DNA of 63,409 nt, filler included, from Parasitella parasitica NRRL 2501 (taxonomy: Eukaryota; Fungi; Mucoromycota), in assembly GCA_025201805.1 (NCBI GenBank). It is 15 parts of 14 records of this genome, joined end to end, with 100 filler letters (N's around TTAATTAATTAA, not from the genome) between each part and the next. Parts side by side here need not be neighbours in the genome. Positions count along the whole stretch, not along the records: positions 36,601 to 38,683 come from MU619390.1; 14 more parts are not named here. One strand, written 5' to 3'. This document shows positions 1,556-38,783 of the stretch, piece after piece. Under the pieces are notes generated by a model, which worked only from the letters and a program-made list of their open reading frames with translations, had not been told where the DNA came from and ran no database searches. How positions within the stretch are numbered: position 1 is the stretch's first letter; every line of letters begins with the position of its first letter. A program made the position numbers and the translations under genes.

Positions 1556-1709
1556 TGTCGTGTGCAGATAAATATGTTTTAGAGTAGATTTATGAGGAAG
1601 TATGTAAAATGTTATATATGAGATAAAAGATACCTTTATTATTTTAAGATACAATTGATATTTATATACTAATTAAAATGGTTACACACAAGTCTGTGAG
1701 CAACTGACA
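1556..1709 (-). repeat. 5' LTR, family A (154 bp)
   Basis: TG...CA termini (TGTCG/TGACA on +), adjacent PBS, near-identical interrupted copy at 20916-22734. Confidence 0.85.
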
Positions 1710-1747
1710 CGCTAAACACACTACATCTGCAAAAAATGTAAAAAGAA

Positions 1748-1831
1748 TCCGGTTTACAAGATTCGAACTAGTGACCTAGAGATGTCGATTTTCACTACAG
1801 TCTCCCGCTCTACCAACTGAGCTAAAACCGG
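1748..1831 (-). tRNA. tRNA-Tyr(GTA) with ~11-nt intron
   Basis: Minus strand CCGGTTT-TAGCTCAGTTGGTAGAGC-GGGAGA-CTGTAG[tgaaaatcgac]A-TCTCT-AGGTC-ACTAG-TTCGAAT-CTTGT-AAACCGG-A folds as a cloverleaf; one T-T mismatch in the T-stem. Confidence 0.9.
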
Positions 1832-2276
1832 AAGGGTTGTAGAATGTCTCAGTCGGTAGAGCGTTCAACGGAATGCGCTGAGCAAGCCTTAATATACCTA
1901 AGGACGTTGGTTCGAATCCCACCTTCTCCCCTTTCCGTGAATCTACCTCACATGAATCGCTACTCACACCACGTTCCATCGGTATGATCAAGCTTGTTTA
2001 GGCGTGCTGCGGTTCGTCTAGCCGGCAATGGCCCAGTGTCTAGTTCGCTTTCCCCCGTCTTGCGGGTAAGGTCTTACCATAGTCTCTCTCACTTGTCTCC
2101 CATTTCGCATTTGGGTTTTAATGCCGTTCTGATTATGGGTCCAGTACCCCTCACAGCTCCCCAACTAACCAATAATCAAAAATATGCTTTTCCCCATCGT
2201 ATCCTCATAGTATAGCAATTAATGACCAAATCTGTCGCATGCATTAAATACTAATAAAAATCAAATAAGTTTTCGC
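1832..2276 (+). mobile_element. tRNA-derived SINE (~445 bp)
   Basis: A-box-like TGTCTCAGTCGG (1845-1856) and B box GGTTCGAATCC (1909-1919), no valid cloverleaf, unique body, 3' tail homologous to 37545-37615, followed by CTGAGCTA (2277-2284) repeating 1817-1824. Confidence 0.75.
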
Positions 2277-2284
2277 CTGAGCTA

Positions 2285-2384
2285 NNNNNNNNNNNNNNNN
2301 NNNNNNNNNNNNNNNNNNNNNNNNNNNNTTAATTAATTAANNNNNNNNNNNNNNNNNNNNNNNNNNNNNNNNNNNNNNNNNNNN
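2285..2384. other. Artificial contig spacer (N44-TTAATTAATTAA-N44)
   Basis: Six-frame stop linker. Also at 4042-4141, 5779-5878, 7401-7500, ~20545-20644, 28671-28770, 30445-30544, 36501-36600, 38684-38783, 42111-42210, 43905-44004, 49581-49680, 51595-51694, 62216-62315. Confidence 0.98.
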
Positions 2385-2964
2385 ATGTACTATTAATATA
2401 GACTGGATAAGACTATACATGGAATGATATACACGCTTATGGATCGATATTAATAATCTTCGCATAGAAGATTGATCAGGGTACTACCTCGGGTAAAGTC
2501 TATCTCCTCACTCAAATAGATTTAAGTTATCTTGAGTCTGCTGATATGTAGGTTAGCACAAAGTTATGATGCTAGTTACGCAGTATTGTCGTACATGTTA
2601 AATTGCGAGAATAGAACATTTATCCACAGTTTAAGTATATAAAGGTTCATCTACCTGGCCAGTAGATGAACTGGAGCTTTATACACCTGTCGATTTGATA
2701 ATAAAACCTATACCTTATCAAGTTGACTTTATTGTTTTTTTTATTACAATTTTTTTCCGTGAATCCATATAACATTTTATACCGATTCCACAGTATATCT
2801 ATTTCGTATATTAAAACACACTCCAGCGTTTACCGACATCTGTTTACTGCAGAAAAAATAAAATAATGATGTTGATATTTGCATCAAGGTTCTCATTGGA
2901 AAATCCATATATAATGTAATCAGATGAAATCAAAAAATCACATATCAACATTGCATATAACGCT

Positions 2965-3095
2965 GATAGGCTCCGATAAACAGCAAAATAAACACTGTCT
3001 TATGCATCATAAGAACAGGCATAATCATCGCTATCCGAGCATATTTTGTTTTTCACTGGGTGATGTCTCTATCAAAAGTTATTTGCAAAAACAAA
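2965..3095 (+). repeat. Dispersed non-coding repeat, probable DNA-transposon subterminal sequence
   Basis: Closely matches the reverse complement of ~51900-52028 (AAATAAACACTGTCTTATGC...TCTCTATCAAAAGTTAT). Confidence 0.75.
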
Positions 3096-3706
3096 TTTAT
3101 TTTGCATTTTTGATTTGCCAGTGGCAAAATTTTTTGGTTTTCGGTGTTTTAATTTTTAAACCCCGCATCTTCAGAATTTGCTTTGTTAGTTCCTGTATTT
3201 CGTATCTATAATTGCTTCTGCTATAAGGTCTTTTTTTTGTTGCAGAGGATTGTATGAGAGTAAAATCAGATACTAAAACTAACAATCCACTACTGCCGAA
3301 GTAGTCAGTATTCCCATGGGTATAATAATATGCACAAATGGGCATAATAAAAAAAAATTGGGCACATTAAGCTGTTCAAATGTGCATAGCAAGATGATCG
3401 AGGTTTTTAACGTAATTTATCAAAGTAACTAGATTGCGATGTAATCACTAGTTGTGATAGCTTGGGTGATTTAAGGAATACACGAGTTAATTATGAAGTC
3501 ATTGCGACCTCTCATTGTCGAGATATATCAATTGTGATTTTATTAAATGGAAGTATTATGCACATGTGCATCTTAAAGTGGCCTAATAATGACGGTGATA
3601 ATAAGCCTCAGCTCGTATAAATTACAAAAAAATATCATACTGCGTATGTTCTGTTTTTTTTTTTATTAACAAAATGAAATAAGGTAAGCTATAAATTAAC
3701 GATGTT

Positions 3707-4041
3707 TGATTTATCAGAATGAGAAATTATTCAAATAAAAAGGTTGTGAATTAATCAGGTAAAGATCTCGTTTATTACATGGAAAAAATTGATTTATCAG
3801 AATGAGAAATTATTCAAATAAAACGGTTGTGAATTAATCAGGTAAAGATCTCGTTTATTACATGGAAAAAATGATGGTTTATATACTAGTGAATCTAAGT
3901 GGACTGATGAGAGGATAAGATACAAGTGTGAGACATGGTGTGATTTAGAGAATGGAACGATAGATCGTATCTATTATCCATGAACATGTCATGTTGAGTT
4001 ATAAATAAGGAACATGATCCATTGGGATCTGTTCCTGAATT
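3707..4041. repeat. LTR family E-like sequence with an 83-bp tandem duplication
   Basis: 3707-3789 is repeated at 3790-3872; both units begin TGATTTATCAGAA like the solo LTR at 6284-6538. Confidence 0.65.
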
Positions 4042-4141
4042 NNNNNNNNNNNNNNNNNNNNNNNNNNNNNNNNNNNNNNNNNNNNTTAATTAATTAANNN
4101 NNNNNNNNNNNNNNNNNNNNNNNNNNNNNNNNNNNNNNNNN

Positions 4142-5778
4142 ATGTTTGAAAACTTTTTATTTAAAATAGTTTTATTTATGATACTAATGTCTGAACCAGG
4201 GTCCACTTTTCCTATGATACGGGTATCATTAATAAGCAAAGGAGTTATTAGATTAAATTCATTTTTTCTTTTTGCAATTGTAGACTTACAATCTTTGTCT
4301 TCCATAGCCTCTCGGAAGAGGTTGCTTTCATTAGCAGAGCCGGAACTCCTGCTTTTGCCGTTGCGGGAACGACGACGTTTGCCCTGACCATTGGGGCGAT
4401 TTTGGTAGGGATGTGATCCAGACGACTGGACAGAATTGACCTTGAAGGATGCCTTCATGGCCAGATACTCGGGGCATTCGTGGCCATGGAACCAGGTCTT
4501 ACCACACCACTTACAGAAGGTGTTTCCAGAAGCCTTCTTCGGTACGTTTGACCTATCAACACGTCTTGAGGTTGATGCTCCCTTATTTAATCGACAATCC
4601 TTTTCGTTGTGGCGAGCTTGAGCACCACCATGATTCGAGCAAAAGAAACTAGTAGGTGACGAGCCAGCAGGGGAGGAGAATCCAGCTGTGGACGATTTTG
4701 GAGAAACACCGCCGCCACGAGAAGCACCACCTTTCTTGATGCTGATGAATGAAATAGGGCACTTTTGTCCATTGAGTATGTTGAGAGCGCACGTTACGAT
4801 TTGATTTGCTGTGAAATCAGATTGGCCAGGATATTGGGCACAGAGAACCGAATTGATTTGAATCTGCCACGAGGCAGGAAAACCCAAAAGAAAAGTATCA
4901 CCCAATGTGGTATCCTCAGAAGAATATCCGGCTTCGAGCATGGCACGAGCAAAGCGATTGTAGTATTCTTCTGTCGTTTCTCCAGGTTTCATGGTAGCGG
5001 TTTGTACCTCTCGACGAGCATCCAATCTTAAGGCAGCATTATTAAATTTCTTTGTAAACAGGTCCTTTGCAGCAGACCAAGTACCAGCCTTCAACAACTC
5101 TTGGTTCAACCACAAATCCAAATCGTACGGAATGGTTAACGGAATGTACCGACGCCAAACATCTTCAACAGATTTGCCAGATGACAGGATAACCTTCTCG
5201 AAGGACCTCAAAAAATGGTGGATGGAATCATATGTCAATTCGTTTGGAAAGTACTTGGTTGCACTTGAACGCAATTGGAACTTTGGAAGGTCTTGCTTGG
5301 ACAGAGAAATTCCTTCATTGTCTCCAGACAATGCAGAGGTAACATTTGCTTCAGATAGCTTGGCAGATGATTTTAATGTAAAGATTAACTTGTTCATCCC
5401 CTCGACTTTTGCACGCATTTCCGAAATATGATTTTGCCCTTGCTCGTTATCAAGATCAGTACCTTCAATCATGTCAATGAGCAACCCGATATATTGATCC
5501 CTCTGGTGCAATAACTTCTTTACAGCGTCAATTGGATTGGAGGAGACCATGGAGATGGAAGAAGTAATTGATGAGGCAGAGTCAGGAGCTGATATAACTG
5601 GGGGAGCCTGAGGCATGTCTTCGTCTTGAAGATTGAGGTGCACTTCGCGCATACCAATCTCCACTTGAGTCAGAGAAGGGTCACCGGCAATTCCAGGAGC
5701 AGAAATGGGAACGGTTGGCTGAAGTGGAGCTTCAACAGCAGAACCTTCGATAGGTGAGTTAGCACCAGGGACAGCAGC
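4142..5778 (-). mobile_element. Ty3/gypsy gag-protease (partial, open across the whole contig)
   Basis: Gag capsid-like region (MKPGETTEEYYNRF), Cys/His knuckles (CSNH..HNEKDC; CKWCGKTWFHGHEC), protease-like motif IIGKVDPGSDISII. Confidence 0.85.
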
Positions 5779-5878
5779 NNNNNNNNNNNNNNNNNNNNNN
5801 NNNNNNNNNNNNNNNNNNNNNNTTAATTAATTAANNNNNNNNNNNNNNNNNNNNNNNNNNNNNNNNNNNNNNNNNNNN

Positions 5879-6022
5879 TATATTTTAGTATAAATAGAGA
5901 TCATATCTTATGTCAATAAAAGTCTTCAGTTTTGTATCTGGTTTTATTCAGAAAGTCTTTATTACTTTACACAAATCTTATTTACATAACATTACGCTGC
6001 GCCCTTTGACACTGGCACAACA
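5879..6022 (+). repeat. Partial LTR, family B
   Basis: Reverse complement of 21216-21360; contains TATAAATA and AATAAA and ends CAACA. Confidence 0.8.
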
Positions 6023-6246
6023 AGCTAATCGTTATAAATGTGAATCGTTCATTGATAAGTTGAGCTTCGCAATTTAGAATAGGTAGAACCCAAATAGATG
6101 GTTTCTTATACAAGACATTCTATTGAATACTTCTATTTACTAGATAGAATAATCGATGCCATTTAACCTTAGATCCGATTAGGAACGGTTGCCATAAAAA
6201 CTGAGTTGAAATAGTGGTAACCATGGTATTCTATGGATAGAACAAA

Positions 6247-6800
6247 GATAATGCTGATAGTAATGATTCTTCGTCGTCCTCAGTGATTTATCAGAAAAGT
6301 TCAAATAGAAATTAATCAGGTGAAGATCCGTTTATTACATTCAAAAATAGAGGGTTTATATACTTCCTATGAACTGAGGGAAGCGATGTGGGGATAAAGG
6401 TTTTAGTGATGAGATCCGGGAGATAGGGTAGATTGTATCTATCCCAAATGTCATGTCATATAATTTTATGATCTGATGATTTACTTTTCAGTATGAGTTT
6501 ATATTACATTGACATCCGGTTTTAGAATTGATACATCACTCAGACGAGAGTAATCAAACCTTTGCTGTGGCTAGAATGGCCAACAAGAGCAAGAAAGCGA
6601 GAAAAGACATCTCAATGATATATATCTTGATTGTAAGCATCTCAATAGTGATTATTTTAGACAGATGCTTAGTAATAATATGAACACTAATGGCCTTCTT
6701 TATCTACCTGTTATTCTAAAATCCCAGAATGGTGTTAAAGTCAACACTTGGTTCCTGCTGGACATTGGATGCACTTTTAGTGCTATCTCCTCTCAACTGG
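6247..6800 (+). pseudogene. Degenerate gag-protease fragment, paralog of 40622-40912
   Basis: High nucleotide identity to 40622-40912; split by the solo LTR at 6284-6538. Confidence 0.85.
6284..6538. repeat. Solo LTR, family E, with CTCAG target-site duplication
   Basis: TG...CA ends flanked by CTCAG on both sides; removing it restores colinearity with ~40655. Confidence 0.85.
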
Positions 6801-7501
6801 TTGATTTTATGCGTCTTGAAACGGATATATGAGAACTGTTCGCGATATGATCGGTTTGATCAGGTGGTAATCTTTTAACTTGAGAGATTATGAATTCAGA
6901 TGTAATTAACAAGCTAAAAATTACGAAATGAATTAGAGCTATGTTAATAAACATCATCCAGTTGATCCTCTCTGTTATTATCATGTTGTAACTTACAAAT
7001 ATATAGATGCTGCCTCCTTGCTTCTTTTTTCGTCGAGTATTATATATGATCTAGTGTATCATCTCTTTTCACAATTAATGTAGGTGGTTATTTGTTATTG
7101 TCGTCACAACATAATTTATTATACTCATGCACTTTTCTTGTATATAGCAAATACCTCAGCGGCTGCTTCAATTTCAAATCGGGTAATAGCTAATCTTGCA
7201 CTGTTTTCCATCATTGCCTGTGTGAACCAAAGGCTACATAATCAAGACAATATCGTATGTAACGATATGAAATGAAACCAATAATAAATTACTGGTCCAT
7301 ACTACAAAAATTGAGAAATAAACAAAAGTTACAGCTACATTTTTATACGCAAATTTTACTTTTTTGAGCACATTTTTTTGAGTGTACGGGCACATTTTCG
7401 NNNNNNNNNNNNNNNNNNNNNNNNNNNNNNNNNNNNNNNNNNNNTTAATTAATTAANNNNNNNNNNNNNNNNNNNNNNNNNNNNNNNNNNNNNNNNNNNN
7501 T

Positions 7502-8356
7502 GATTCGCCCCGCAGAGTAGGGAGAAAGCCTGTTACTAGCGATGAGGAGGATTCGGACAACCCAAAGTCAAAAAGAAAGGCACAGAACCGAGCAGCACAG
7601 AGGGCTTTTAGGGAAAGAAAGGAAAACCACGTTCGTGTTCTTGAAGATAGGGTCAAGGAATTGGAAGAGCTGAATTTGGACAAGAACTCGAAGCTGCTGC
7701 TGGAAAACGAAAAACTGAAAGAAATGATTGCCCGTTTGCAAAATGAAAATGCAGCTCTGCTGGGATCAACCGTGTCGTTTGATAGTCCTCTGAATTCCCT
7801 CGGCGATGAAAGGCCCCAGAAGATCATCCGCCAGAACAACCTGACGGCATCACCCACTGCTAATTTCGACAGCTTGAGCAGCGGCTATTCCACATCATCG
7901 AAGAGTAGGTCAAACACACCCGAAATTCAGATCCGCCATCAGCTGACCATTGACGACATCTTGAAAAGCGACTTGCCTTCCAAGGCACTGCTTGATCATT
8001 CGGAACTGCTCAACAACGATAAATTGGATTACGGCTCACAGCTGGACGATATATTAAACCAAAACCACCTTGCGTTTGAAGCAAATCCGTCTCAGTTTGA
8101 TTTCTTTTATCCTCTCACAGCGTCAAATGACATATTAAACACTGCTGCGATTACGTTGCCGCCCGAGGGAGAAAAGGACAGGGAAATCAAGTCCATCACA
8201 AAGGTGTGGGACAAAATTTCCCAGCATCCAAGATTCGATGAGATCGACATGGATGTGCTGTGTGATGAGATGCACAAAAAGGCGACTTGCCAAGATTTTG
8301 ATCATGATAAAGAGATGGAAAAGCTTGTTGATCAATATTATCCCGCAGAAATCTAA
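7502..8356 (+). CDS. Yap1/AP-1-like bZIP transcription factor (5' partial)
   Basis: KRKAQNRAAQRAFRERKE basic region and zipper; C-terminal cysteine-rich domain DMDVLCDEMHKKATC. Confidence 0.9.
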   Translation, partial: DSPRRVGRKPVTSDEEDSDNPKSKRKAQNRAAQRAFRERKENHVRVLEDRVKELEELNLDKNSKLLLENEKLKEMIARLQNENAALLGSTVSFDSPLNSLGDERPQKIIRQNNLTASPTANFDSLSSGYSTSSKSRSNTPEIQIRHQLTIDDILKSDLPSKALLDHSELLNNDKLDYGSQLDDILNQNHLAFEANPSQFDFFYPLTASNDILNTAAITLPPEGEKDREIKSITKVWDKISQHPRFDEIDMDVLCDEMHKKATCQDFDHDKEMEKLVDQYYPAEI

Positions 8357-8594: not shown

Positions 8595-9980
8595 AAAGTT
8601 TACTTCAAGAACTCATCAGTGTGATTCCCATAATGATACAAGCAAGAGAAACATATGGGCTCAGTCTTTCTCCTACTCTTGCAGCCTTCCAAAACAATCC
8701 AAGCACACTATCATTACCAAGTCAGTTGAAAGATCCTCCATCCATCGAGATTTCTCGCTTACCCAGTCTTTTTTCTATCTAGTAAAGAGGGTGCTTGTGC
8801 CCTCACGTAAGTGCAGGTGCAAATCAAAAGTAAAATTACCAGCAATAACGATTGAAAGTTAAAAATGGCAGACTACAGAGAGCTATTTAGGTCACTTGTC
8901 TGCTTGAACGACTGTATTTCACTAGTTACCATTTTATATTGTGCGTCGAGCTGTGGTAAAAAAAAAACAAAGGGCAACTGGGAATATCAAACACACATTA
9001 GCGCTTTATAATGCTGGACGAGTCACATTACGACACGAAGAGAGAATGGGTTCATCATGATGAATGGCTGATAATAGATCGTTCACAGCGCGCATCTACA
9101 ACATTCAAGCACTACTAGAGTGATCATACCACCGTACACCTTGTCAAAGTCTCAAAACATTTGAGGATAATTGGCTTGACAGTTAGACGCTGAGTGATAT
9201 AAGATGTTCATTGCATTTTGAGCAAATTCGTCAATGCAAGGAAATCATGTATCGTCAGGGTTCTACAAAACACTGGTCCGGCAGCGATTGCTCCAAAAAC
9301 CATGCCCAAATATGTACTTGAATCTTATTTTTCGTATTTATACAATGTGTATATCATCAGTGAATAGCTACTGTTTGCAGAATTTTATCATCACATTAAG
9401 CAAAGCTTCAGGTCTTTATTTAACATATCTATCACCAATTCCAGTTCCTTGCGAGACTCATCGTGCAGCTTTTTAACATGCGGTTGCATTTTACGGTTGT
9501 ACAATGGTGGACTGACAGCGGATTATTACACGCAATATTGTCCCAGAAACATACAGACTTACCGAATATCATCTTTATCCTTGAAATATTTCAACTGACA
9601 CAGGTTTCTGACAATGTCATATTCAATGCCCTTTCTCAAAGAAGCATTGTTCAAAAGCATCAGTGTATTTTTCGCTACCAATATACGTTGGTTACTTTTC
9701 TTCTCCTCAAAGAAGGCGGTAGAATTTGTCATGTACAAATACCTTTGATTTCAATTTCTGGATCAGTCAAATATAGCTTATTTTCAAAGCCTTGACGGAT
9801 CAAGGATTTGACATGTCTCTTATTGACGCCATTCACAGCCGCATCTCCTGCTCTCAAGAATTGACGATACCGACTGCAGATGCTCATGTGTGGTGAATGA
9901 CAGTAGTCGCTCGGCGCAAGGCTGCAACATTTACCACTTTGAAGGGAGCTTAGACTTCGTGACTATGACATACAGCACAG

Positions 9981-9984
9981 CCAC

Positions 9985-10025
<41 letters not shown>
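9981..10025. repeat. (CA)n microsatellite
   Basis: Seen directly. Confidence 0.9.
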
Positions 10026-36600: not shown

Positions 36601-37615
36601 GTACACCATGATTATGTATTTACTTTCACCAGTACAATGCATTTGAAAGGTCGTGGCTGCTCTCCTCTTGCTGACTTTGATCCTTGCGATCCCAAGAATC
36701 TCTTGGATCCAAAGTATGACTCTCTCTCTCCCTCTCTTCGTGCTGAAAAAGCTGTAGAGATTGAAAATCTCCGTTGTCTCCGTGCGCTGTCGTTTGTCCG
36801 TCGCTCTGTTCGCCTCTCTGTTGCTCGTTCCTTTCTGTTTTACGACAGAATTACACAAAAGCAATTCGATGCTATTGTAGCAGAGGAATTGTCTTTTCGT
36901 GCCGCCGCTGCTCCTCGTCCCCCTGCTCCCTCTGCAAATGCTATCCAAGATCGCTTGGCCAAGAAACAGCACCTCCGCTATCTGAGCAATCTGCTCTATT
37001 TTGACCCTGCCACAGCTAAAACTTTGGCATACACTGAATCTCCTGCTCTTTCTCCCTCTGCTGCTATTGACACAGAGATGACAGAAATATCTGGTGTCTA
37101 AACGTGTCTGTCAAATGTAGTTTCTTCTGTTGCCCTCCGTTTCCGCCTGCTGTCTTCCCTTGTGCTTTTGTTTTCTTTTGTCTTTTCTCCCGTTACTTGT
37201 TCTTTGGTCCCTGCTCTCCTTCCTTTTATTACATTTCTTATGTAATAATATCTCTGCCTCTCCTTTTTTTCTCGTTTTTTTGTGTCTTCCCTGGTTGTGT
37301 CTTTTGTTTTTGTTTGTGCTGCTGTATGCCGGTCGAGGTCTCCTCAGTCGCACCGTGATCATACACCACAACTTCTCCATCAGCCTTCCTTCTTCTTTGT
37401 TCTCGTACTCCTTTTTCATGACATTACAACTTTTTGCAAGATATATTTTTTAAGATCGACCCCGCTTTTCCTTTTTTGGTATCATGCCGACGGTGCCAGA
37501 TTGGATCAGATAGCTTATTATATATTCCTTTTTTATTGTAATAGATTCTCTTAGTATAGCAACTTATGATCATATCGATTAATGCATTAGATACTATTAA
37601 TAAAATTCAATCTTA
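36601..37615 (+). mobile_element. ORF1-only non-autonomous LINE derivative (5' partial)
   Basis: ORF1 C-terminus (VHHDY..DFDPCDPKNLLDPKY..RCLRALSF..SVARSF, stop at 37101), pyrimidine-rich UTR without ORF2, 3' stem-loop, then antisense tRNA 5' fragment. Confidence 0.75.
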
Positions 37616-37632
37616 AACTGAGCTAAACGAGC

Positions 37633-38675
37633 TTACTGATCTTGACACCCTGCAGAATTGTCTTGTTGCGATGTTTGTGGGCAGTACTTGGGTTAATGTT
37701 GCAAAGCATATCACATGTATTCCCAGTATCAAACATCGCTACAATGTCTTGGCCACTCGTTTTGCTCTGCGTGCTGCTACTTTGCCACCCGACAGCCTGT
37801 TAGTCCTGCTACGGGATAGCTTGTCTTATACAAGATTGGACCGTTTTATATGCGACAATCCGCTGTATGTATCTCTGCCTGCTTCTGTGCCTTCGTCTGC
37901 TGGCTTAAAACAAATATTTGATGAATATTGGCAAGACCAAGTAGATCGCCAACTGGAATCCGCAGCTGTTACTGGACGTTTGACTCTGCTCCGTGCTTGT
38001 AGGCCTACCGCTACTCAACCGGATCCTATCTTGTACCTTCCAATCAGTCGCTCTGCTCGTAGTCGTTTAGTTCGTTGGCGCCTAGGTCGCTTCACAAACA
38101 GGCGTGAAGAGTGTCCCTGTATGTCACCAGAGGGTGTTCATATATCTCGGGATCATTTTGTCACATGCCGTGCTCTTGACCCTGCGCTTTTTGATGTCCT
38201 GCCTTTTGCTCCTCCTGGTGTGCATCCTATAGATCAAGCTCTGAACGAACTGCCAGTGAAAGCCTCTGAGGGTCCGCCTGACTACTGGCCTGCTCTGCTA
38301 CATTTACTGTATGCTATAGATTGCCTTGTGCATCCGCTGGCTGTCATAGCCCCGGCTCCAGATCCCGAGTCCCTTTGGTTCTATCCGAATGATTGATCTG
38401 ACTGTGATGAACCTGCCTACATTGTTGTTTTCCTTGTGCGGCGCCTCGGTGGTAAGTCCTATCAAAGTTCCCATCCGTTGGTTGTTCCTCAAGATCCTCA
38501 ATGTTAGCACTATTAGTCTCGCCGTCCTGCTTTACTCTATTCACTCTCCTTTTTATCCCTTTTGATAGTGTCCTGATAGGGGTTTTTTTGTTCCTTTTTC
38601 TTTCTCTTTCTTGAAATTAGGCAATGCTCATATCGAGTGCCCATTTAATTTCTTATAAATAAACATAAATCTTTA
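37633..38675 (+). mobile_element. 5'-truncated LINE (ORF2 C-terminus to 38396 plus 3' UTR)
   Basis: LLRACRP..DPILYLP..RSRLVRWRLG..CPC..H..C homologous to the other ORF2 C-termini; flanked by AACTGAGC on both sides. Confidence 0.88.
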
Positions 38676-38783
38676 AACTGAGCNNNNNNNNNNNNNNNNN
38701 NNNNNNNNNNNNNNNNNNNNNNNNNNNTTAATTAATTAANNNNNNNNNNNNNNNNNNNNNNNNNNNNNNNNNNNNNNNNNNNN

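Follow-up and report, generated by a model that had tools for sequence, protein, structure and literature searches.

How did a short, tRNA-like sequence come to lie directly before a truncated retroelement in the genome of Parasitella parasitica NRRL 2501? The window, meaning the whole stretch of DNA that was analyzed, comprises 63,409 nucleotides joined from 15 parts of assembly GCA_025201805.1, and the piece that raises this question (positions 36601-38683) comes from MU619390.1. A first-pass annotation had reported a 17-mer, AACTGAGCTAAACGAGC, at 37616-37632 and a shorter match to it, AACTGAGC, at 38676-38683, and had read these as the antisense 5' end of a tRNA, duplicated on either side of a LINE that had lost its 5' part. 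Both strings are present exactly as described, and the 8-mer AACTGAGC occurs twice against an expectation of 0.07 from shuffled sequences, none of which reached two occurrences. The piece quite probably lies inside a head-to-tail array formed by a Mucorales LINE family with sequence-specific insertion into tRNA genes, with a truncated element (B) and an ORF2-less element (A) at the same site. All parts of this array lie on the plus strand.

Element B as a whole spans 37633-38679, corresponding to approximately the last 1,047 bp of a 5'-truncated LINE. Its ORF2 remnant (37633-38396) comprises the last ~255 codons, translates without interruption up to a stop codon at 38394-38396, and contains a CxC...H...C motif. 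In a protein search, the frame at 37617-38393 matched 37 proteins, every one of them from Mucorales. The best match was a 'reverse transcriptase domain-containing' protein of Mucor ambiguus with 80% amino-acid identity, and more distant matches came from Cokeromyces, Benjaminiella, Pilaira, and Rhizopus. Among the coding parts of these relatives, B is homologous solely to the C-terminus of ORF2, and Pfam returned no match for either ORF of the piece (the A and B frames). At the nucleotide level, homology to the M. ambiguus copy (L003) starts exactly at 37633 and extends to the contig end with 76% identity. Because this homology begins at 37633 and spans the last ~255 ORF2 codons together with the 3' UTR, the truncation in mid-ORF2 that had been proposed for B is real.

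The ORF2 remnant is followed by a 3' UTR of subfamily 1 (38397-38679), 283 nt of non-coding sequence with an AT-rich tail that ends in ...TCTTTAAACT (...AATCTTTAAACT) and has no poly(A). A 13-copy alignment analyzed with RNAalifold places a long hairpin at 38431-38494 and a small hairpin, GCTC-ATAT-CGAG, at 38626-38638, and a motif scan locates ATCGAGTGCCCATT at 38632-38645. To the right of B, only the four bases GAGC (38680-38683) precede the contig end. They equal the first four bases of the 13-mer GAGCTAAACGAGC (37620-37632) that lies directly to the left of B, referred to here as the tag, which we interpret as the left copy of B's target-site duplication or as the tag of the array; in place and length it agrees with 13-bp duplications proven in relatives. 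On this piece, neither ARAGORN (also with relaxed settings and introns) nor Rfam called a tRNA or a family, as is expected for a fragment.

The DNA to the left of the tag is the 3' end of a second element, A, rather than the rest of a tRNA. The frame at 36601-37101 is open from the edge of the piece to a stop codon at 37099-37101 and resembles the C-terminal part of ORF1; in tblastn, it is 33-38% identical to ORF1 sequences from full-length relatives (L004 553-1524; L127 6203-7183 and 836-1897). It is followed by 518 nt of CT-rich, non-coding sequence (37102-37619), a 3' UTR of subfamily 2 that ends in ...CAATCTTAAACT. Positions 37259-37435 match the 3' UTR of a subfamily-2 LINE (L127 275-448; 71% over 182 nt), and the motif ATGATCATATCGATTAATGCAT is common to both. 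The terminal ...ACT of A stands directly before the tag, as it does in all copies of the family. No ORF2 is present between the ORF1 of A and its 3' UTR (36601-37619), and A is therefore a copy with an internal deletion or a non-autonomous derivative that consists of ORF1 alone, inserted at the site that B used. Since the left neighbor of B is the 3' end of another element, the piece shows an internal junction of an array, comparable to those at L003, L004, and L127 in relatives.

To interpret this junction, we relied on DNA around twelve of the protein matches and on 30 junctions at 19 loci in Mucor, Pilaira, Benjaminiella, Cokeromyces, and Rhizopus. One full-length relative, L127 (1897-5556), matches the Pfam domains RVT_1 (6.7e-23), Exo_endo_phos_2 (3.5e-12), and Exo_endo_phos (2.5e-7), with an ORF1 of ~325-350 aa upstream, and full-length units measure ~4.8-5.3 kb. 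Across the family, copies have no LTRs, share a common 3' end, and are flanked by target-site duplications, and truncated copies occur in the piece studied here (B) and at L005, L002, L131, and L139. Judged by these features, the family is a non-LTR LINE with an APE endonuclease and a reverse transcriptase and without a poly(A) tail.

All 30 related junctions share one anatomy. The element ends in ...(A/C)CT, without poly(A), and is followed by GAG(C/T)N9. The bases AACT form the conserved 3' terminus of the element (...AAACT or ...AACCT among copies), and the duplication pairs found in relatives are 12-13 bp long and always begin with GAG(C/T). These true pairs fix the boundary, so that the duplication starts at GAG and covers 12-13 bp. 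Furthermore, the D loop of tRNA-Ala reads GCTC-AAATGG, whereas the family junctions read GCTC-AGTT or GCTC-AGGT, which marks AACT as element-borne. A 17-bp duplication is ruled out, because AACT/ACCT belongs to the element in 30 of 30 junctions and the proven pairs measure 12-13 bp. The duplication of all 17 bases assumed in the first-pass annotation is therefore corrected to the 13 bp at 37620-37632. The proposed layout, GCTCGTT-TA-GCTC-AGTT, is indeed tRNA-like, but only 13 of its bases are target-derived and AACT is the terminus of the element. The reverse complement of the tag itself, GCTCGTT-TA-GCTC, resembles tRNA bases 1-13, with the tag reading antisense from base 13 to base 1.

The same anatomy limits what the recurrence of AACTGAGC can tell. 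Because all 30 junctions read ...(A/C)CT and then GAG(C/T), a repeat of AACT plus GAGC is expected for any two copies of the family, whatever their target. As every family junction begins with GAG(C/T), the GAGC at 38680-38683 is uninformative on the target. The string common to both junctions of the window is 11 nt long, TTAAACTGAGC, and the target information consists of only nine bases, TAAACGAGC, which are present once, as the right copy ends with the contig. The string thus recurs as reported, but its recurrence is no sign of a target duplication, and bracketing of B by the same tag is putative within the window.

The relatives reveal what such tags stand for. In four genera, the corresponding 13-mer equals bases 1-13 of tRNA-Ala(AGC), with the insertion placed between bases 13 and 14. 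The same position is used in three species of Mucor, in Pilaira, Benjaminiella, and Cokeromyces, and in one metagenomic relative, and the tRNA-Ala tag is found at L127 (M. velutinosus), at L003 (M. ambiguus), and in metagenomic relatives (L128, L129). In three genera, the first LINE directly adjoins base 1 of an intact, antisense tRNA-Ala gene, and head-to-tail LINEs follow with the 13-mer between each. More specifically, ARAGORN calls an intact tRNA-Ala(AGC) on the minus strand of the Cokeromyces recurvatus locus L131 (9581-9653), the base 1 of which adjoins a 5'-truncated LINE. This LINE starts in the reverse transcriptase domain and ends in ...AATCTTTAACCT. Next come GAGCTACATCCCC, which is complementary to bases 13 to 1 of tRNA-Ala, a second LINE, and the 13-mer again (13-mers at 11521 and 16460). 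In Pilaira anomala (L139), the array lies among ordinary genes and runs from an intact tRNA-Ala (5404-5476) through a truncated LINE, tag, full LINE, tag, LINE, and tag to unique flank, with 13-mers at 5464, 5947, 11520, and 13491. In Benjaminiella poitrasii (L140/L141), an intact tRNA-Ala at 1302-1374 borders directly on the 5' end of a LINE of full length, tags follow at 6523, 11427, and 16591, and at least five further units of ~5 kb, belonging to two alternating subfamilies, are each terminated by a tag.

Two earlier arguments can be judged against these arrays. Truncated copies abut tRNA base 1 at both L131 and L139, which upholds the argument that a truncated copy without its own 5' end cannot supply the tRNA segment. 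The claim that the duplication ends at tRNA position +1 is right in kind, as proven at L131, L139, and L140, but the right copy in the window is GAGC alone.

Two further features tie the tags to the genes beside them. The tRNA-Ala of Pilaira carries a compensated acceptor variant (A5>T/T68>A), and all Pilaira tags carry this variant as well. At L001, the tag at 10003 is followed by a flank that shares 88% identity with the DNA upstream of an intact tRNA-Ala gene at the same locus, 8 kb from the tag, and this site is a disrupted tRNA-Ala paralogue with its own flank. The Pilaira variant and the L001 flank exclude coincidence and an RNA-primer origin of the tags, and tRNA genes are the normal target of this LINE family, as the arrays of the relatives prove. 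The upstream flanks of tRNA-Ala(AGC) genes have a conserved motif in common, AAAYCAYGKGGAAAAT...GACCAAAAA, within and between species (L001 2037-2085, L001 10016-10050, and L128 1297-1325). The tRNA-Ala at L001 1962-2036 was considered as the 5' partner of the L001 array and ruled out; it has its own upstream flank, paralogous to that at 10016.

The tRNA specificity of the family is strong without being absolute. Solitary truncated copies occupy non-tRNA GAGC/GAGT sites at two loci. At L005 in M. lusitanicus, the copy lies between GAGCTTCTTTCCA (8094-8106) and GAGCTTTTTTCCA (10702-10714), with LINE homology from 8107, and adjoins the start of a protein gene. At L002 in M. plumbeus, GAGTCATTTGCG is duplicated at 388 and 1752. 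Common to all sites are GAG(C/T) and a preference for TA, and the verified off-target sites (GAGCTT.., GAGTCA..) share little else. In M. velutinosus (L004), the identical 13-mer GAGCCAAGAAGGC at 371 and 11013 flanks a full-length LINE; on the flanks of L004, L006, and L001, ARAGORN and Rfam called no tRNA or family. To the right of the L004 tag, the stretch at 11026-11120 is a degenerate, tRNA-like sequence in sense orientation with a GTGGATTCGAATCCCAC T-arm, called by neither program.

The family is also found at tRNA-like sequences beyond tRNA-Ala. In Rhizopus arrhizus (L132-L138, contigs from seven assemblies), the tag is GAGCTAAGCGACC (L132 1526-1538), the complement of which, GGTCGCT-TA-GCTC, resembles a tRNA 5' end. 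Its difference from the Ala tag implies a switch of the target tRNA between genera. The tag of the window, in turn, most likely derives from a different tRNA than tRNA-Ala(AGC), and we consider it likely that it is a genuine tRNA 5' end. As a lead to the tRNA concerned we take isoleucine, since yeast tRNA-Ile(UAU) presumably starts with GCTCGTGTAGCTC.

A reading that keeps the family and its mechanism but treats the 13-mer of the window as an off-target genomic look-alike, selected through a preference for GAGCTA... and unrelated to any tRNA 5' end, seems unlikely to us but has several observations in its favor. The duplications at L005 and L002 are verified non-tRNA sites, GAG(C/T) and the TA preference are all that the sites have in common, and a tRNA with the sequence of the window tag appears in none of the fetched loci, where all five tRNA genes called by ARAGORN are tRNA-Ala(AGC) and none begins with GCTCGTTTAGCTC. 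However, the verified off-targets are solitary and truncated, while the site in the window has been used at least twice, by A and by B, as at the proven tRNA sites. The sequence GCTCGTT-TA-GCTC also has the G1, T8-A9, and GCTC D-stem layout of a tRNA, and Rhizopus is a case in which the family uses a tRNA-like 5' end other than that of tRNA-Ala. These three points argue for a tRNA origin of the window tag.

Two other explanations would remove the target DNA from the picture altogether. If a 5' tRNA fragment had primed reverse transcription and been carried into each copy, the geometry would fit, as the element's sense strand is followed by antisense tRNA bases that end at the mature 5' end. 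Such priming is ruled out as far as the relatives are concerned and is extremely improbable for the window: the 13-mer lies within an intact neighboring tRNA gene and stands after every array unit, including the lineage-specific acceptor variant, the L001 tag at 10003 keeps the upstream flank of the tRNA gene itself, and the non-tRNA sites show ordinary duplications of genomic DNA. It is very improbable, too, that the 17-mer is part of the element, at its 5' or 3' end, or a repeat that arose by chance. AACT truly is the 3' end of the element, and AACTGAGC precedes full-length 5' ends at L003 and L004. But the nine bases after GAGC vary by locus, match the neighboring tRNA gene, and precede truncated and full-length copies alike, and the 8-mer is far more frequent than the shuffles predict. 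An origin of the 13-mer within the element or by chance is already contradicted by these locus-specific bases that match adjacent tRNA genes.

Under the preferred reading, insertion into tRNA genes, the junction anatomy suggests the following course. In relatives, the element is placed antisense to the tRNA, its 3' end is joined to tRNA base 13, bases 13 to 1 are duplicated, and its 5' end, whether complete or truncated, meets tRNA base 1, so that the whole gene is restored on that side. The APE-type endonuclease would nick the tRNA-sense strand after C13 (5'-..TAGCTC^A-3'), the last of the bases 8-13 that make up the first half of the A box. The freed 3'-OH would then serve as primer for copying the element RNA, a template that the reverse transcriptase probably recognizes via the covarying hairpins of the 3' UTR. 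The other strand would be cut at the tRNA -1/+1 boundary, at a distance of 13 bp. Fill-in of this stagger would then duplicate bases 1-13, rebuilding the complete tRNA coding sequence on the 5' side of the element and leaving a 13-base stump with the old upstream flank on its 3' side. Further insertions at the gene or the stump would lengthen a head-to-tail array with identical tags. Since all sites share GAG(C/T) and the off-target sites little else, DNA sequence would be recognized directly; the simplest reading is that the endonuclease recognizes a short motif and that further bases of the tRNA 5' sequence strengthen this recognition.

Extended to the whole lineage, this scheme would describe an APE LINE lineage of Mucorales, spread across genera, that inserts sequence-specifically inside tRNA genes (nick after TAGCTC, 13-bp stagger, gene regenerated), builds long arrays from a single tRNA gene, and switches between tRNA species. 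Its targets would be tRNA-Ala(AGC) in four genera (Mucor, Pilaira, Benjaminiella, and Cokeromyces), in Rhizopus a tRNA-like end that begins GGTCGCT..., and, according to the first-pass annotation, several tRNAs in the genome of the window. We regard this extended description, taken in full, as an even call.

Recognition of the RNA would involve the 3' UTR. The subfamily-1 hairpins comprise 23 predicted pairs, 12 of which show compensatory changes (RNAalifold, 13 copies from 6 genera); the long hairpin follows directly after the stop codon, and the small GCTC/GAG hairpin lies near the end. This predicted covariation fits a LINE whose reverse transcriptase recognizes its own 3' UTR instead of poly(A). 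The long hairpin has an invariant GGTAAGT...ATCAAAGTTCCCA core, in which GTAAGT is similar to a 5' splice site as well. Scanning metagenomes for the 14-mer ATCGAGTGCCCATT yielded chance matches only.

Several known elements share parts of this behavior. Sequence-specific APE LINEs of the R1 and Tx1 groups occupy 28S rDNA (R1/RT), U2 snRNA genes (Keno), 5S rDNA (Mutsu), and the spacer of zebrafish tRNA-Leu (Dewa, the known member with a tRNA-related target) (Kojima & Fujiwara 2004, as cited in PMC3706591). The Mucorales family resembles them in combining an APE endonuclease and a reverse transcriptase, in a fixed position within a multicopy RNA gene, in a fixed-length duplication and a precise 3' junction without poly(A), and in tandem arrays and 5'-truncated copies at the same site. 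In contrast, its target lies inside tRNA genes rather than in rDNA, snRNA genes, or a tRNA spacer, its 13-bp stagger ends at tRNA +1 so that the gene is rebuilt intact, and its hosts are early-diverging fungi. The Dictyostelium elements TRE5-A/TRE3 and the yeast element Ty3 take positions beside the tRNA gene or some way off, through contact with the Pol III machinery (PMC3706591, PMC5391098). With all of these, the Mucorales LINE shares the use of tRNA genes as safe havens, and with Ty3 also the final position directly upstream of tRNA +1. Unlike them, it cuts at a fixed base inside the gene, and its sites share GAG(C/T), which is not the TRE5-A/TRE3-type pattern of a distance window outside the gene without a sequence requirement at the site. 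Dada DNA transposons (Perkinsus Dada-tI/tY) target the A box within tRNA genes and duplicate TAGCTC (PMC3706591). The A-box position is shared, and TAGCTC corresponds to bases 8-13 that border the nick of the LINE, but Dada elements are DNA transposons that use a DDE transposase and generate duplications of 6-7 bp.

Within the same hosts, GremLINE1 of Mucor is described as having a zf-RVT domain, an A-rich 3' end, and duplications beginning with A/T in AT-rich pericentromeric DNA (10.1101/706580; PMC9963178). Both are LINEs with ORF1, APE endonuclease, reverse transcriptase, and clustered copies. In contrast to that description, the tRNA-targeting family has no match to zf-RVT (PF13966), ends in ...CT, and generates GAG-initial duplications, and it falls outside GremLINE1; in the scheme of PMC9963178, its class may be 'other LINE'. 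On GremLINE1, neither 10.1101/706580 nor PMC9963178 discusses tRNA targeting. Another LINE, which has a zf-RVT domain and is A-rich in its 3' region, occupies L131 (1-~4850), ~4.7 kb to the left of the array's tRNA-Ala gene. Its reverse transcriptase shares 28% identity with that of the tRNA-targeting family, and it may be GremLINE1-like. Our search of the full-text literature found no account of tRNA-internal LINE targeting in Mucorales; Repbase reports lay outside its scope, and a prior description there is possible. Within the searchable literature, the family appears to be a previously undescribed variant of target-specific LINEs, and the interpretation appears right in kind for the family.

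The LINE R2 is being engineered for programmable gene insertion. Target-specific LINEs serve as natural models for programmable insertion into safe harbors and show how mobile elements persist in compact genomes. To these, the present family would add a target within tRNA genes that the element repairs through the duplication it makes, and a switching between tRNA species that can be traced across related genera. One host is M. lusitanicus, in RNAi mutants of which LINE retrotransposition can be provoked (PMC9963178), and the specificity is thereby open to experiment. The arrays also affect the annotation of Mucorales pathogen genomes, as ~5 kb units beside tRNA genes collapse or break assemblies, as at the contig end in the window.

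Two of the loci contain passengers or later arrivals. At L001, a non-coding unit of ~280 bp (9723-10002) ends in ...AAATCACT just before the tRNA-Ala tag and may have been carried along by the LINE machinery as a short, SINE-like, non-autonomous passenger. At L004, a Ty3/gypsy-type LTR element (1571-7635) is nested in the full-length LINE, and its insertion looks recent, since its two 336-bp repeats (1571-1906 and 7300-7635) are 100% identical.
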